Shown: positions 42,939 to 50,900 of the stretch, piece by piece
Layout of the letters: each line of letters begins with the position of its first letter
Position numbering within the stretch: the stretch's first letter is position 1
Assembly: GCA_965112735.1 (NCBI GenBank)
Contig: OZ218950.1
Location: forward strand, 4,588,001-4,652,000
Length of the DNA stretch: 64,000 nucleotides
DNA from: Phaeosaccion multiseriatum
Lineage: Eukaryota; Protista; Ochrophyta, other classes
Reading direction: 5' to 3'
Program-made: the position numbers and the translations under genes
The notes under the pieces: generated by a model
Seen by the model: the letters and a program-made list of their open reading frames with translations, nothing else
The model's database searches: none
What the model was told of the DNA's origin: nothing

Positions 42939-43258
42939 CCGACACATCAATAGATTTTTTAGAGCGGAACGGCAAACTGGCGCATTTTTATACCGTCGAC
43001 CGCCGGCCCGGAAAAGGGAGAAGAAAAAGAAATTTGGAATTTTTTGGCAAAGGCGGGAAGAGCAAAATCGCCGACGAGGCAGGCAATCGGAGGGCAGGGG
43101 CGGAGGGCAGAGGGGCGGGCGGGGAGAGGGGCAGGTCAGGAAAGAGGAGAAGACAAAGGCATAGATGGCGATGGCGGGAACAAGGAGGCGAGCAGAGGTT
43201 AGGACAGGAAGGCGCGCGAGTGCAAGCAACCGCAACGAAGTTATCTCCGCCCACTCAC

Positions 43259-44845
43259 CTACAACGATTGTTGTACAGTCACAGCCCGGCAGGGCTGAGC
43301 CCGGGAGGGCTGAGCCCTGCAGGGCTGACTGCTTCCCCGGCTTGACGCCCCAGCTGTTGTTGATTCGTTGCCCGCCCGAGCACATGATGATGAGTGAGGA
43401 CAAGTAAGCAAGCCAGGGAAACTCAGGGGCTGTTTCTTGTTCAGGCAGCAAGCAAGCAAGTAGGCAACACCAATGGCTGGACAGGCAGATGAGCGAGACG
43501 CAGGCAGGGGCGCAATCAGCAACTTACTGGGAAGATGTTGTGGGTGGCGTGGCCTTGGAGTTGGCCATGCCTTTGAGAAGTCGTACAGCCCGAACAGAGT
43601 GATTGTTCGGGCCGCACAAGGGTCGCGCAACAGCGTGGCCTTGCATGTGGGGCAAGTCCACACCTTCTTGGCCCCCACGCACTCGTTGAATGCACCACAG
43701 GCGGTGCATGTCTTGGTGGTGAAGGCCTCGCTGGGCTCAAGCAGCACTAGTGAGCAGGAGGGAGAGGCGATGGCCTGAGCGAGAGGAGTTCGGGCAGCCA
43801 AAGAAGGAAGTCAATGAGAGGAATTGTTAGCTCAGCCACACGAGGGTTGCTGATGGGGACGGAGGTGTCTCAGTCTCAGCGACACCAGCCAGCCAGCCAG
43901 CCCAACACCAAGCCAACAACAAGCAACAGACGCACACACGCACCGTCTTGAGCCGTTGGCGGAATAGACCCATGGAGAGGGCGTCCATGTCCCTCCCCAT
44001 ATCCCTCGGCAGCCCCGAGATCTGGCGGCCCCGCCGGCTGGACCATGCCTGGGCTCGGACAGGAGGCAACACAAAGTGCGTGAAGTTCGCCACGATGAGC
44101 CGTATGGCTATCGTGTGGAGGACGAGCGTCTTGTGGTGCAAGAGCGCCCGCATCTTGGCCGCCTCCAGGCGAAGAGCCCGCGTGTCCTGTCCACTCTGTG
44201 CGCGGGCGGAGGGAGGGAGGGAGGGATTAGAAAGTGACATCAGCCACGACAAGAGACTTGGGCGAGGCACGCATCCTCCTCACCTGCGCTGCCTGCCACA
44301 CCTGGCTCTCCAGCTTCGCTATCCTCCTCTGCAGCGGCCGCATGGAGGCGGAGAAGCCGTGACCCACCCTGAAGAAGCGCCCAGTGTGGGCACACCAGAT
44401 GGACAGGAACGTCCGCACTCCGGGGTCGGCCCCTCCCCATCTTTGCTCGGGGGTTAGCTTTCCAAGATACTCCCTGACCTCGCGCCGGAACTCTGCCGTC
44501 TGCCCCTCCAGGGGATTCAGCACATCCACGTACTTGGTGTTGGCGTGGAGGCCAGAGCGCTGAGGAAGGTCCTCCACACGGAGACCGCGCCACTTTCTGT
44601 CCTGGCCATGCTCTCCTGCCATGTCTCGGTCCAGCTTCCTGATCTTGGCGTCCACGTCCGACAGCTCCTTCTTCTTCTTGCGGCGGCTCCGCCATTCCTT
44701 GACCTGATGTCGGCCAAGAGGGGAAACAAGCCACAAGCCAAAGGAGTTCTTTGAGATGACAAGGTGTCAAGGTACTACTGCTGCTGCTGCTCCTGCTGCT
44801 GCTACTACTGCTGCTACTACTGTTGCTGCTCTGCAGCTATTCCTG

Positions 44846-44886
<41 letters not shown>

Positions 44887-47879
44887 GCTACTCTTAAGAG
44901 TACTTACCCCGAGTTGCTGCAGGTCTCGACGAAGTAGCTTGGCTCTATAACGCAACTCTACCAACTCCTCCATCCGGCCCGCGTCGTCAGCCCCTTCCTC
45001 CCTCCCTCCCTCGCTCCCTCCCTCCCTCCCTCGCTCCCTCGCCCCCTCCCTCCCTCGCTCCCTCGCTCCCTCGCTCCCTCGCTCCCTCCCTCCCTCGCTC
45101 CCTCCCTCTCTTCCTCCCTCTCTCCCTCCCTCCCTCCCTCCCTCCCTCCCTCCCTCTCTTCCTCCCTCTCTCCCTCCCTCCCTCCCTCCCTCCCTCCCTC
45201 TCTCCCTCTCTCTCTCCCTCTCTCTCTCCCTCCCTCGCTCCCTCCCTCGCTCCCTCCCTCGCTCCCCCCCTCCCCCACCCCTCCCTCCCCCCCTCTCCCA
45301 CCCCCACCCGCTCCCCCAGGCCTCTCACGGCGGAGCTTGCAGTACTGCTCCAACTCCTCCTTCTCCCCCCTCTCCCCCCCATGCACTTCCATGTGCGGAA
45401 CAGCTCGTTGGGGTTCCTCAAACTGGAGATGGAGCGATGTACCATGGGCGCAGTCCCCTAGAACGGGCCCCGTCACACAAAGCCACGCTGGCTGCACCGA
45501 CGTCCCCCCATCCGCCTGGTGGGCTGGCTCCCGCCAAAGGCGCCGCGAGGGCTTCCCTGTCTGGTCGAACAGGGTCAGAGTGTGCCCCGCCGTGACGCAC
45601 ACGGTCACCCTCTCGATCCATCGGGCTCCGTTATTGACGAGGATGGCTTCACCCCCTCCAACGGTCACCCCAAAGTTCCGGTACTGCAGCCCAAACTCGC
45701 CCGGGTTGAGGTGCCCACAACACCCTGCCTTGAAGTATTCGGTGCTATGCACCTGCCTCTCCCCACGCTCCACTGCGCCGCGCTCCCCACGGAATCGCCC
45801 AACCCCAACGTGTGTCTGCATCGCGTCGATCTGCCTGTTAACGGATGGGGTGAGAAAGCGCCTCGACGGAGGCTGGAGACAACGCTCTTTGATTGTGTCC
45901 ACAGACGCTTGCTCAGTGCCAAGCTCGGCATGCTGTAGAGCCATGGTAAGGATCTCCGCCGCAGCCTTTGCCCTGCACTTGTCGCCGCCATACACGTAGC
46001 TGAGTGTAGTCTCTGTGTTGGCGAGTGTAGTCTCTCCGACATGTTGTGTGACGACAAGAGCGGCAAGGCGGGCCTCAAACACCGGGCCGCTCGTCAGCCC
46101 CTGCCAACTGTCCTGCCTGGCAAGAGTGGAGTATGCGCTCTGAACTCTCTCCTGCTGCTCCTGAGCCTTCTGCTCAACAGAATGCTCTGGAGGCCCCGGC
46201 TCTTCCTCAGTGGCTCCCCTCCCGACCCCCCTCCCCAGATCGACGCACCACTTCACGAGCCCGCGCGCAGCTTCCAGCACCTGCTTTGCTTCCTCCCCTC
46301 CTCTCGCTGCCATAAAACCAGCAGTTGTTGCAGCGTCCAGCACAAGCTTCCGCTGATCGTCTGTCTCATACTCCGCTGATTGGGCGTATGTTAGGGCCCC
46401 AGAGGCCGCCATGTGCTGGTAGGTCTCACGGTAGTTATCTTGGCCCTCCGGGCCGTGGACTGCCTTGTGAGCCTCCACAGCGAGAATGGCAATCTCTTCC
46501 GCGACAGGTCGTCGTCGGACGACGCTGAGCTTCTTGACCTGTGCCTTGACATCCCCGAGAAGAGTCAAAGGACTTGGGAGCTGCCGTCCAGCCTGCCGTC
46601 CTCGGAACTCCTCTGCCGTGGTGGGCCCTTCCTTGGAGCCGGCGTATTTGTACGTGAGGGAGGGCACAAACTCGGCTCTCGACATGTAGAGGGCCAACTC
46701 ATCTAGAAAGCCCTTTTGCATCTGAGAAGAGGGGCAGGCAAAGGCGTGTGAGTTGGCAGCGTCAGATGCAGCAGGTACAAGAAGAGCCGTGGCACACATG
46801 TTGGAATTCGGACCATCGTCGACATTTGGAGGGGGGTATTCCATTCTAGGCCTCATCTGTCCCTGGTGATATACCAGAGCGTGGGCTCCCTCTCTCCTCC
46901 CTTTCCCCTCCCCTCCCACTCAGCCACTCACCAGCACGCAGCGTCCTCGTCTCCCTTGCGTGATGAAGGAGTAAAGATTGGCCGCAAAAGCTACATGAGC
47001 CTGCTCGCGGATAGGGGGCGGTCGTCCCCTTGTCTCCGACCCCCCGCTCCCGTAGACGGTCATCCAGGGAATCTTCTCCGCCTTTGCAGACTGCAGCAGC
47101 AACTTGGCCTCCTCCACCGCCGCCTCCTCATGCCCTCGATACCTCTCCTGTAACAGGAGCGGCGCCATGAGGCTCCTCAGCTGCGTGTCAAGGCTATCGT
47201 CGGTATGCCACGAAAGAGAGGCCGTCCAAACCCCCCCCCCCTTTCCCCCTAGCTGCTTCGACACCCGCGTCCTCTTGGCACTGACATCAGCGCTTGCTTG
47301 CGAGCTTCCCCCGCGCATCCTCGCCGTGTCCTCCTTCCTCTCCTGCCACCCCTCTTCCTCCTCCCGCTTCTTCTTGGCCTGGCGGTTTTTCTTCTTCTCC
47401 GTCTTGGACGGAGGCCTGGGCAAGCGCTCCTTCTCATGGCCCTTCACCCCCTGCGCCGCCCAAACGCCAAGCACGCCTTGGCATGCCTCACTTGTCGCGC
47501 CAAGCTTCACCAACACCCCCAAGCACGCGTTGAATCGCTTCTTCGCGCCCCCGTAGGTCTGTGGTGACTCCAGGCTAAACTTGCGGGGCAGGCGCAGACC
47601 CTGCAACTCGTCATCGCGCCAGAGCCCCAAGAGTGCTTCAAGTCTCTTAGCCCCGGCCAGAAAGGAGGCACGGTTGGAGCTGCCCCCCGATTTGACCATT
47701 GACACAATGAGGTAGGGATCCATCCGCATCAACTGCTTGATCAACGTGAAGACTTGCTGCGCCTCCTCAGCCGAGTCCTCAGCCGTGAATGAGATTTCAT
47801 TCCCCACGCCCCACCACGGCTCGAGCTTAGCACTAAAGTGCCCCCAGAGTTTGCACAGCTCCGACCAGCAGCTGCCGCC

Positions 47880-47943
<64 letters not shown>

Positions 47944-50900
47944 GGCTCCTTGGCCCTCCCTTGAGCATCAAAAACCTCCCCCTGGATGGTGGTGTCCTCT
48001 CGGTGTTGTAGCATCCCATTGTCCAGGAGGAAGCGAGGAACGCACGCGACCAGATCCTTCAGCAAAGCCATGTCGTTGAAGGCACTCTGTGCCACCCCTC
48101 GACTCGCAGCTCCTCCCCTCAGCACACTCAACAGCGCTGGCTGCTGCTGGACAATCACAGATATTGTACTTCTGCTCTTCTTCTCCTTCGCCTTTCCACC
48201 TGTCTTCCTCTTTGCTGCCGCTTCCTTCTTCCTCTTTGCTGCTGCAGCAGCTGCCGCTTCCTCCTTCCTCTTGTTCTCCTCGGCCATCCGCATAGGGGCA
48301 AGCCGAGCGTTTCGCAACACTGTGGCGCCGGCCTCACCATCATCATCCCCTGTCGGGAGGAAACTATACATGTTGGAGCGGAATTGCTGCATCACCCGCC
48401 GATTCTGCTGCGCCGCCCTCTCGCGCCTTCGTAGCTTGTTCTTCTGCCTGTCCTCCCTCACTTGCGTTGATGCCATAATGGCATCATTCCGCTCCACACC
48501 AGCCCCCGAGACACGGTCGCTAGGGAAGGGCACATTCAACTTGAGGCGCTGGCCGTAGTGCTTCCATTTCTCGGGCTTCTCCGCCGTCAGGACGACCGGC
48601 TTGAAGCCCGAGACTTCGGCACCATCGCGACACAGGGGCATCGACTCCTTCGCCCAGGCACGGGCACACACGTCTGGAATGTGCATCCCCTCCCGAAGAG
48701 CCAACACGTCTTTCCCAACAGCCAACATGGACACCTTCCCTTTGCCCTCCTTGCAGTCCTCGCGAGCCGCGCAAGCCCGACGATGCGCCGCGAGCTGCAT
48801 AGGTCTCCTAGTCTGGCGCAAATAACGCCATGGGTCGGCGGCAAGCTTGAGGAGGAGGCACCGAAGCAGCAGGTCTTGCTTGTCTCCCTCCGCCGTCGGC
48901 TCCACCAGGACAATAAGAGTGGTGTTATGCCACGTTCGCCAGTGACCTTGACCCCCCGCGAAAGTGGCTAACACGTTCTTGTTCTCGAGCACCACCTTGA
49001 CCCTCCTCAAGCGCGGAAGCAGGTTGGAGCAGAAGAGGCTATCCTCTTTGACCTGACCATGCCAAGCGAGAAGAAGGTTGAAGAAAAGGTAAGGGGTGGA
49101 TTCTGCATCGGCTCCGTCGTGTCTGCCTGCCTGCCCATATGCCTGCCTGCCTGCCCATATGCCTGCCCATATGCCTGCCTGCCTGCCTGCCTGCCTCCCT
49201 CTCTGCCTGCCCATATGCCTCTCTGCCTGCCTGCCCATATGCCTGCCCATATGCCTGCCCATATGCCTGCCTGCCTGCCTGCCTGCCCATATGCCCCTGT
49301 TCCAGCCGTGCCCTTCGCTCAAATCAAATGCTCACCTCAAGGCCAGCGTCCGTGAGGATGCTCCTCCCCTCCCCCAGGACAGGGCGGGAGTCGCCAACGA
49401 AGATGACGCTGCAGTTCAGGCGTCCTTGTCTCGTCCGCTCTGCCAGTAGCCGGGCACAACCGATGCAGGGGAGGGTCGAGATGACCAGTATGAGCTCATC
49501 CTCACCAGTCCACCCGTGCCGCTTCTCAATGCACTCGAGTAGCTCCGGCTCGGCATGAGCACCTACAGTGACTCCGTGCAAACAGCTGGACACATCAGCT
49601 CTGGCCGGTCCACTCCGTCTTGCCACAAGCCACTCCTCTCTGGTGACGTTGTAGGCCCCCGCTGCTATGGCACTGTGGTTCTGCCCCGGTTCCTTCGCCT
49701 TCACAGCCTCAGAATACACACGCCTGGACAGATCCACCACACCGTCCTTCCACGGAACCTTCTCATCCAGCACCGTCGGACGCAGTTCCCGCCCCCCGCC
49801 CTCCTCCTGCTGCTGCTCCTGCTGCTGCTGCTGCTGCTGCTCCTGCTCCTGCTCCTGCTGCTGCTGCTGCTCCTGCTGCTGCTCAGGCGCGGACACGTCA
49901 GGCCTCGAAAGCAGCGTCGGCCCCCCGCGCTTCTTGCTCTTGTTCTTCTCTCTCTGCTGCTGCTGCTGCTGCTGCGGCGGCTCCTGCTGCTGCTGCTGCT
50001 GCGGCTGCTGCTCCTGAGGCGGGGGTAGGTCGGCCGCACACCAGGCATCCACAGCGCTGTTGGGCACCACGAGCACCTCGAACAGCAGATTGTTGTGCCT
50101 GCCTCTCATAAGGGCAATGCACTTGCGCTTGTCTGTATCCACCCCCCCGCCCAGGCCCTCCCAGAGGGCGTCGGCCATCTCCTTGCCCTACTCCTCACCG
50201 AGCATGGTGAACGACTCGACTCGATCGTTGCCCCCAGGTGCCTCAAAATCAGAGAGAGTCACACACTTTCCGTCGTCTCCAGTCTCCATCTCGCCGACCA
50301 GGACAATTCGTAGCCTCACTTCTGCCGCCTTGGTCGATCGGCACTCCGGAATAAGGAGCATGCCGCTCCCCTGGCCCAGAAACTCAGAGTGTTGGTGAGC
50401 AAACTTCTTGACCTTGTGGTACAGAGGGGTCAAGAGCACAGACAGGCAACGCTGGTCTACCTCCAGCCGGGCATAGGTCTGACGCACATCATGTGGCCGT
50501 GTCGTCGTCGCTCGCGTTCTCGCCTTGGCTCGACTGCGCTTCCTCGGCCTTGTCGAGAACGCGCCGGGGAAGAAAGGACTAAGCGCCTTTATAGCTGACC
50601 GAACGCCAGCCTTTTGCCCCTCAGCCTTCTCTGCGGCCCTCTATGACAAGAAGATACGACAAGAAGACAATAGGAGCGGAGAGGGAGGCGGCCAAAGGGT
50701 GAGCGAGGGGGTGCTTGGCATGTTGGAATCCGGAATGTAATTGTCAGGTGGGGGGAAAGTAGCATTCACAATTTTCTTACCTCCTCTTTCGCACGAGCCT
50801 TCCGCTTCTCCTCTGCTTCGCGCGCCTTGCGCCAAGCCTTGACGGCATCAGAGTCCTCCCCCCCCTTGTCCCCCAACCAACTCTTGAAGCAGTCCGCCTT

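Follow-up and report, generated by a model that had tools for sequence, protein, structure and literature searches.

The minus strand of the window, by which we mean the whole 64,000-nucleotide stretch of DNA analysed here, encodes a Fanzor2-like RuvC/zinc-ribbon module that keeps a complete D-E-D triad and carries an unusual RuvC-III motif, RDPCAARTI, which on the evidence of its codons is maintained by selection. We lean, with modest confidence, towards a module that would still act as a metal-dependent nuclease, the two changes in RuvC-III remodelling a surface. The first-pass annotation of this DNA had already proposed that the triad is kept, as the Asp of ADPG, a shifted Glu in SEAFTTKTC and the Asp of the RD pair, and that RDPCAARTI replaces RDxNxAxNI, with Cys at D+2, Thr at D+6 and both asparagines gone. 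All of these residues could be located on the minus strand, and the alignment to a characterised Fanzor2 that it had proposed, made with phmmer against ApmFz2, bears out both the kept triad and the two replaced asparagines.

The RuvC/zinc-ribbon module and its gene

In this eukaryotic genome of 67 Mb (22 contigs, ~59% GC), three open segments lie on the minus strand at 43.5-44.7 kb of the window, separated by canonical GT..AG introns that are all in phase 0. The predicted splice acceptor at the start of the first segment is cag|GTC, and exons A to C are predicted to be the three final exons of a very long gene interrupted by introns. All four public runs consist of DNA contigs, introns included, and no RNA runs are listed. 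The features of the module are:

44284..44703, minus strand: exon A, a Lys/Arg-rich linker and RuvC-I (GGADPGVRTF)
44419-44430, minus strand: ADPG of RuvC-I, with the Asp codon at 44425-44427
44196..44283, minus strand: intron A-B (gtgagg...cacag), phase 0, at a position matching the paralogs
43944..44195, minus strand: exon B, RuvC helix and RuvC-II region, containing HFVLPPVRAQAW
44058-44072, minus strand: VLPPV, with Pro at the canonical RuvC-II Glu position, a Fanzor-type rearrangement
43775..43943, minus strand: intron B-C (gtgcgt...ctcag), phase 0, at a position matching paralogs L026 and L027
43529..43774, minus strand: exon C, with the shifted Glu, C4 zinc ribbon, conserved Lys and RuvC-III
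43706-43732, minus strand: SEAFTTKTC with the shifted Glu, codon at 43727-43729
43697-43708 and 43643-43654, minus strand: CTAC and CPTC of the zinc ribbon, CxxC-14-CxxC
43658-43669, minus strand: KKVW, with the conserved zinc-ribbon Lys
43601-43627, minus strand: RuvC-III RDPCAARTI, with Asp at 43622-43624, Cys (D+2) at 43616-43618 and Thr (D+6) at 43604-43606

Exon C is where the module meets characterised proteins directly. It matches Pfam PF07282 (Cas12f1-like TNB) at 30.9 bits, above the gathering cut-off of 26.3, and the top PDB match of its profile is ApmFz2 (E 1.2e-13, over ~60 residues only), with no PDB match to SpuFz1 at E<=1. In the phmmer alignment against the PDB, exon C covers residues 465-516 of mimivirus L79/ApmFz2 (9b0l), with its Glu opposite Glu467 and its Asp opposite Asp501, both belonging to the triad of Asp324, Glu467 and Asp501 that was defined experimentally (PMC11832414; PMC10530073), and the Cys and Thr of the window copy correspond to Asn503 and Asn507. 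Direct matches to solved structures are confined to the C-terminal ~60 residues of the module, and PDB sequence searches with exons A and B found no TnpB, whether the exons were used singly or as profiles of their paralogs. Their place was found by hhalign, in which the paralog alignment of each exon was compared with a profile built from 56 full-length relatives: exon A falls on columns 241-292 (E 6.4e-11, 97.1% probability), exon B on columns 301-374 (E 9e-10, 96.5% probability) and exon C on columns 382-448 (E 1.8e-26), and the three are colinear on that profile. With this E value and the Pfam score, the match of exon C greatly exceeds what chance would give. The GGADPGVRTF of exon A, invariant in five paralog sequences, aligns with alDPGvRTF of the relatives, and the fvlPP of exon B (HFVLPPV) falls on their IllP.F, which places a Pro at the canonical Glu position.

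This is the arrangement expected of a Fanzor, for which the published fingerprint consists of DPG in RuvC-I, an inert residue (Pro or Gly) in place of the canonical RuvC-II Glu, an alternative Glu placed six residues ahead of the first CxxC, a CxxC-x(12-18)-CxxC ribbon with the Asp 4-8 residues further on, and 120-160 residues from DPG to the alternative Glu (PMC10711439). The module has the DPG, the Pro, and then E-AFTTKT-CTAC, a 14-residue spacer, CPTC and six residues to the Asp; from DPG to the alternative Glu we count 144 residues (45 + 84 + 15, from the exon translations), a figure that depends on the inferred splice model. The Fanzor2 ApmFz2 (PDB 9B0L) and the IS607-type 'pro-Fanzor' TnpB proteins share with it the DPG, the Pro at the canonical Glu position, the Glu six residues before a C4 zinc ribbon and the RD of RuvC-III. 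Unlike ApmFz2, the window family has Cys or Ser and Thr at the equivalents of Asn503 and Asn507, and its module is predicted to end a multi-exon gene of >2,000 codons in which a deaminase domain is also encoded.

In every intact copy of the two subfamilies described below, 1a and 1b, that deaminase is found on the same strand, ~5.5 kb upstream. The features that connect it to the module in the window are:

49336..49800, minus strand: deaminase domain, with AIAAG at 49657-49671, HAEP at 49546-49557 and PCIGC at 49456-49470
46722..46931, minus strand: intron GTGAGT...CAG, phase 0, between open frames of 800 aa and 653 aa

The domain has the motifs of a CDA-fold zinc deaminase (H-A-E...P-C-x-x-C, with HAEP and PCKGC or PCYAC in the paralogs) and scores 18-25.4 bits against PF00383, for which the cut-off is 25. 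Its exon ends at 49336 with the donor GTGAGC and the next starts at 49052, in phase 0, and the same junction of GT donor and CAG acceptor recurs in phase 0 and at an equal position in three lineages. The sole in-frame stop between the 800-aa and 653-aa frames (46920-46922) sits inside the intron at 46722..46931, whilst in paralog L027 a single frame of 779 codons runs from the middle region directly into RuvC-I. Because of the phase-0 junctions, the intronic stop and the continuous frame of L027, our best model places deaminase and RuvC module in a single predicted gene of >2,000 codons; judged by synteny and in-frame splice sites, the deaminase-Fanzor linkage looks real. Between the two domains lie ~1,500 residues without assigned function.

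The introns of this giant gene at window positions 49100-49320 and 44960-45420 hold G-rich tandem repeats (GGCAGGCA-type; one reads GGREGG in frame), and at 49100-49299 the contig depth rises in spikes and loose contig ends are numerous.

Fanzors carry WED and REC domains at their N-terminus, encode an omega/fRNA at the 3' end that runs to the element boundary, and cleave DNA under RNA guidance. Upstream of RuvC-I we detected no WED or REC, as hhalign aligns RuvC-I only, and Pfam scans of the pre-RuvC segment at E<=10 returned nothing relevant. An AF2 model of the 702-residue, single-exon stretch of paralog L027 that holds the pre-RuvC region and RuvC-I, computed from a 9-row alignment, reached a pLDDT of 39.8, too poor for a fold search; the atlas feature neighbours of the pre-RuvC and RuvC-I stretch are mostly OrfB_IS605/HTH_OrfB_IS605 clusters, which is a weak signal.

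A beta-rich block of ~150 residues (window 45420-45960, minus strand, with equivalents in L026 and L027) is conserved in all lineages. It has a conserved P, Q and G-x-x-R-F-R, then short strands ending in L-H-L-Q-F-E. By eye, and against the relative P0143 only, it recalls the N-terminal TnpB motif (P..Q...G..RF), and no obvious helical REC is apparent.

At its other end, the repeated unit closes on a conserved block:

42979..43059, minus strand: block at the end of the repeated unit, almost without variation; in all copies homology reaches precisely to 42979 and no further
42979-43150, minus strand: window stretch equivalent to the terminal blocks at L026:8693-8773 and at ~2170-2390 of L006 and L007

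The boundary at 42979 is common to all copies of both subfamilies, and a sharply defined 3' end is also a trait of TnpB/Fanzor elements. The last ~80 nt are almost invariant even between 1a and 1b, although the synonymous sites of the coding parts are saturated. The predicted RNA fold of the block is no better than that of shuffled sequence (z 0.18), and a search of the window for an inverted copy of the 28 terminal bases, allowing up to three mismatches, found none. The block has the look of an end or promoter element that works at the level of DNA, more than that of a structured RNA. Within it, a GC-rich stretch centred on GTCGAC precedes TATAAAAA, which resembles a TATA box directed out of the unit.

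The RuvC-III variant in paralogs and relatives

The copies in this genome fall into two subfamilies, distinguished by the residue at D+2:

Family 1a, RDPCAARTI: the window copy, C7:3.65 Mb, C1:4.34 Mb, a split copy on C5 and a partial copy on C12
Family 1b, RDPSAARTI: copies on C6, C4 and C5, and degenerate copies on C7, C3 and C2

The two are ~66% identical in exon C. Across exons A-C of 1a, the 1b copy on C6 and the 1b copies on C4/C5, dS is 1.6-2.8, and thus saturated, and dN is ~0.38, with dN/dS at 0.14-0.23; the RuvC exons are therefore more constrained than the deaminase domain, where the ratio is ~0.34. Within R-D-P-[C/S]-A-A-R-T-I-T-L, 8 of the 11 codons differ between lineages, and seven of these differences are synonymous, the eighth being the variable position itself (TGT versus TCA), which is Cys throughout 1a and Ser throughout 1b. 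Thr at D+6 is present in every copy of both subfamilies, spelled ACA, ACG or ACC depending on the lineage. The Asp, Glu and Asp of the triad are invariant across intact paralogs, as is the zinc-ribbon Lys (G-x-K-K-x-W), and intron positions are common to several lineages. A motif that is kept through synonymous codon changes at saturated dS, in genes with shared introns, is a maintained variant and not the outcome of drift; by this codon argument, R-D-P-[C/S]-A-A-R-T-I-T-L is a lineage-specific form of RuvC-III under selection.

How unusual is the pair of replacements? With exon C as the query, HMMER was run exhaustively against 1.84 billion cluster representatives and returned 408 proteins at E<=1e-3, the best at 48.7 bits and with identities of 50-56%; none of the 1.84 billion representatives is a close relative of exon C. 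Residues were scored in the best 150 of the 408:

Alternative Glu: canonical in 144/150, other in 6
RuvC-III Asp: canonical in 148/150, other in 2
D+2: Asn in 109/150; His 12, Gly 11, Cys 5, Ser 5, Ala 3, Gln 2, Val 2, Leu 1
D+6: Asn in 135/150; Gly 11; Lys, Cys and Ser 1 each; one unaligned; Thr 0

A residue other than Asn thus stands at D+2 in 41 of these best 150 (27%; Cys or Ser in 7%) and at D+6 in 10%, frequencies that may be slightly inflated, as the ranking favours relatives similar to a query with neither asparagine. Both are replaced in 3 of the best 150, all of them short fragments, and the nearest of the double-loss relatives, P0036, comes from a 639-bp metagenome contig that offers no context. 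Taken singly, and within this sample, the change at D+2 is a common natural variant and that at D+6 an uncommon one, whilst the pair is rare. P0022, P0035 and P0143, full-length relatives in which D+2 is Cys or Ala, have Pfam OrfB_IS605 and/or TNB, the ordinary domain content of a TnpB. The D+2 Asn belongs to the family-defining DRDxN/NADxN motif, DRDXN being a named clade motif (PMC10691335).

Two further Fanzor families reside in the same genome. The second (L012 and L013, at C6:2535635 and C8:2562102) has DPG, an alternative Glu and HRDASAARAIL, in which both asparagines are lost, and no deaminase was detected nearby; the double loss is therefore not specific to the fusion. The third (L014-L016, at C1:1862146 and C3:2422817-2423472) has a canonical GRDVNGARNIF.

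A single ancestral loss of the asparagines in families 1 and 2 was considered and the claim dropped: in a tree of ~56 residues the two are sisters only when the motif columns are included, and with the motif masked they fall in the same 16-tip clade and are not sisters. The first zinc knuckle of the second family is unusual, with a CxxxxC spacing, and the third family has an IFLPQFDTQDM motif and apparent frameshifts or introns.

Possible consequences of the paired replacements

Judging from helical periodicity, D+2 and D+6 (i, i+4) would share one face of a helix, away from the Asp, with the Asp, Ala (D+3/D+4) and Ile (D+7) on another side. The replacements, Ser or Cys and Thr, are conservative in kind because they are small and polar; they would remodel a second-shell or substrate-facing surface and would not switch catalysis off. 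We posit such a remodelled, still-catalytic RuvC on the strength of the invariant triad, the strong constraint and two precedents among Fanzor1 enzymes: GtFz1 (N658) cuts DNA with an Asn at the RuvC-III Asp position, and SpuFz1 D606N has activity above wild type (PMC11423790). Both resemble the window family in having a non-canonical RuvC-III in a eukaryotic Fanzor. There, however, the catalytic Asp itself has become Asn and activity has been measured, whereas the window family keeps the Asp and has changed two asparagines close to it.

The first-pass annotation took the opposite view, that the nuclease may be attenuated, a nickase or binding-only. Set out in full, this has the Asn replacements attenuating RuvC to nicking or binding and leaves the module as the RNA-guided targeting part of the deaminase, in a natural base-editor layout. 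The phase-0 introns that join the two domains and the presence of the deaminase ~5.5 kb upstream in every intact 1a and 1b copy speak for it, and so does the membership of the D+2 Asn in a family-defining motif (PMC10691335). Moreover, since the joint loss is rare (3 in the best 150 of 408) and Thr at D+6 is never seen in that set, a functional shift may exist. Could the triad be kept for RNA processing only, or target cleavage be reduced to nicking? Either may be so, and in Cas12m the triad is reportedly retained for RNA processing only. Against attenuation, the triad and Lys are under strong purifying selection, in exons held more tightly than the deaminase; the second Fanzor family has an equal double loss with no deaminase detected nearby; and many relatives that appear intact have lost one of the two. 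Nuclease-dead derivatives of TnpB or Cas12 are known, TldR being one. Others, namely Cas12k, RpoE-linked TnpB and the Ri-7/Ri-8 clades, have lost at least one catalytic residue or the RuvC-III motif (PMC10691335); in them, as in the window gene, a module of the TnpB family has become part of a wider functional setting, but the window family keeps all three catalytic residues under purifying selection. Fanzors with non-canonical residues in RuvC-III can stay fully active (PMC11423790), and as active Fanzor1 enzymes tolerate Asp-to-Asn in RuvC-III, 'attenuated, nickase or binding-only' is unproven. The indirect evidence leans against attenuation, and we think it the less likely reading; that the module serves as an attenuated targeting part for the deaminase seems rather unlikely. 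Laboratory base editors, in which a deaminase is combined with a nuclease-impaired Cas9, Cas12 or TnpB, resemble the predicted polypeptide in bringing deaminase and nuclease-type module together, yet they carry deliberate mutations of catalytic residues, whereas the window gene has an intact triad. In its most far-reaching form, the paired Asn changes would retune a Fanzor active site to nicking or binding and make of the giant protein a natural, mobile-element-borne, RNA-guided base editor, which we hold to be quite improbable.

Perhaps, instead, the module is no longer RNA-guided and is an exapted nuclease or nucleic-acid-binding domain, placed C-terminally in a giant multidomain protein, whose altered helix face meets a new partner or substrate. 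The absence of a WED/REC signal upstream of RuvC-I, a gene several times longer than the Fanzors in the published descriptions compared, a 3' terminal block without RNA-structure signal and the lack of close relatives among 1.84 billion cluster representatives would all sit well with exaptation. We nonetheless consider it unlikely, given the mostly OrfB_IS605/HTH_OrfB_IS605 atlas neighbours of the pre-RuvC stretch (weak as they are), a spacing of P, Q and G-x-x-R-F upstream of RuvC-I that matches the TnpB N-terminal pattern by eye against P0143, and a sharp, near-invariant 3' end reminiscent of TnpB/Fanzor elements. As for the window copy being a decaying pseudogene and its odd motif a product of drift, this is scarcely credible: degenerate copies do exist (broken cysteines at C3:2492696-2493121, a TAG at C7:3650202, fragments on C2) and the 1a copy on C5 is split, but the window exons are open, their splice sites canonical and the only in-frame stop intronic, and across lineages whose dS is saturated the motif varies conservatively or not at all.

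For the remodelled but still-catalytic RuvC that we favour, retained catalysis, RNA guidance and a link to deaminase function are what we infer from these patterns. If the variant is neutral or compensated, which we think likelier, both asparagines of RDxNxAxNI would be dispensable in a strongly selected nuclease module, and that would be useful for the classification and engineering of Fanzors. If, on the other hand, the variant changed the chemistry of cutting, this would be the first natural example of a TnpB-family nuclease tuned to be used next to a deaminase, and could guide the design of compact base editors. Under either reading, R-D-P-[C/S]-A-A-R-T-I offers a convenient marker of the deaminase-linked family.

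Rearranged and degenerate copies

Several copies may bear traces of exchange or rearrangement. The 1a copy at C1:4.34 Mb (L030) is 99-100% identical to window 43550-44450 over exons B and C and both short introns, and only 72-77% identical in the flanking intron and 3' region, a pattern consistent with gene conversion across the RuvC core. The near-identical 1a copy on C5 is split inside intron B-C (window 43881/43882): the part matching 42977-43881 lies at G000:C5:1757143 on the minus strand and the part from 43882 at C5:2301763 on the plus strand, ~545 kb away and in opposite orientation, which suggests either a large inversion with its breakpoint in the element or a misassembly. On C3, degenerate 1b sequences form a head-to-head inverted pair (G000:C3:2492696-2493121) that has lost zinc-ribbon cysteines, and a degenerate 1b copy at C7:3650202-3651379, with a TAG in exon A, adjoins the oppositely oriented 1a copy at C7:3653367-3659620.
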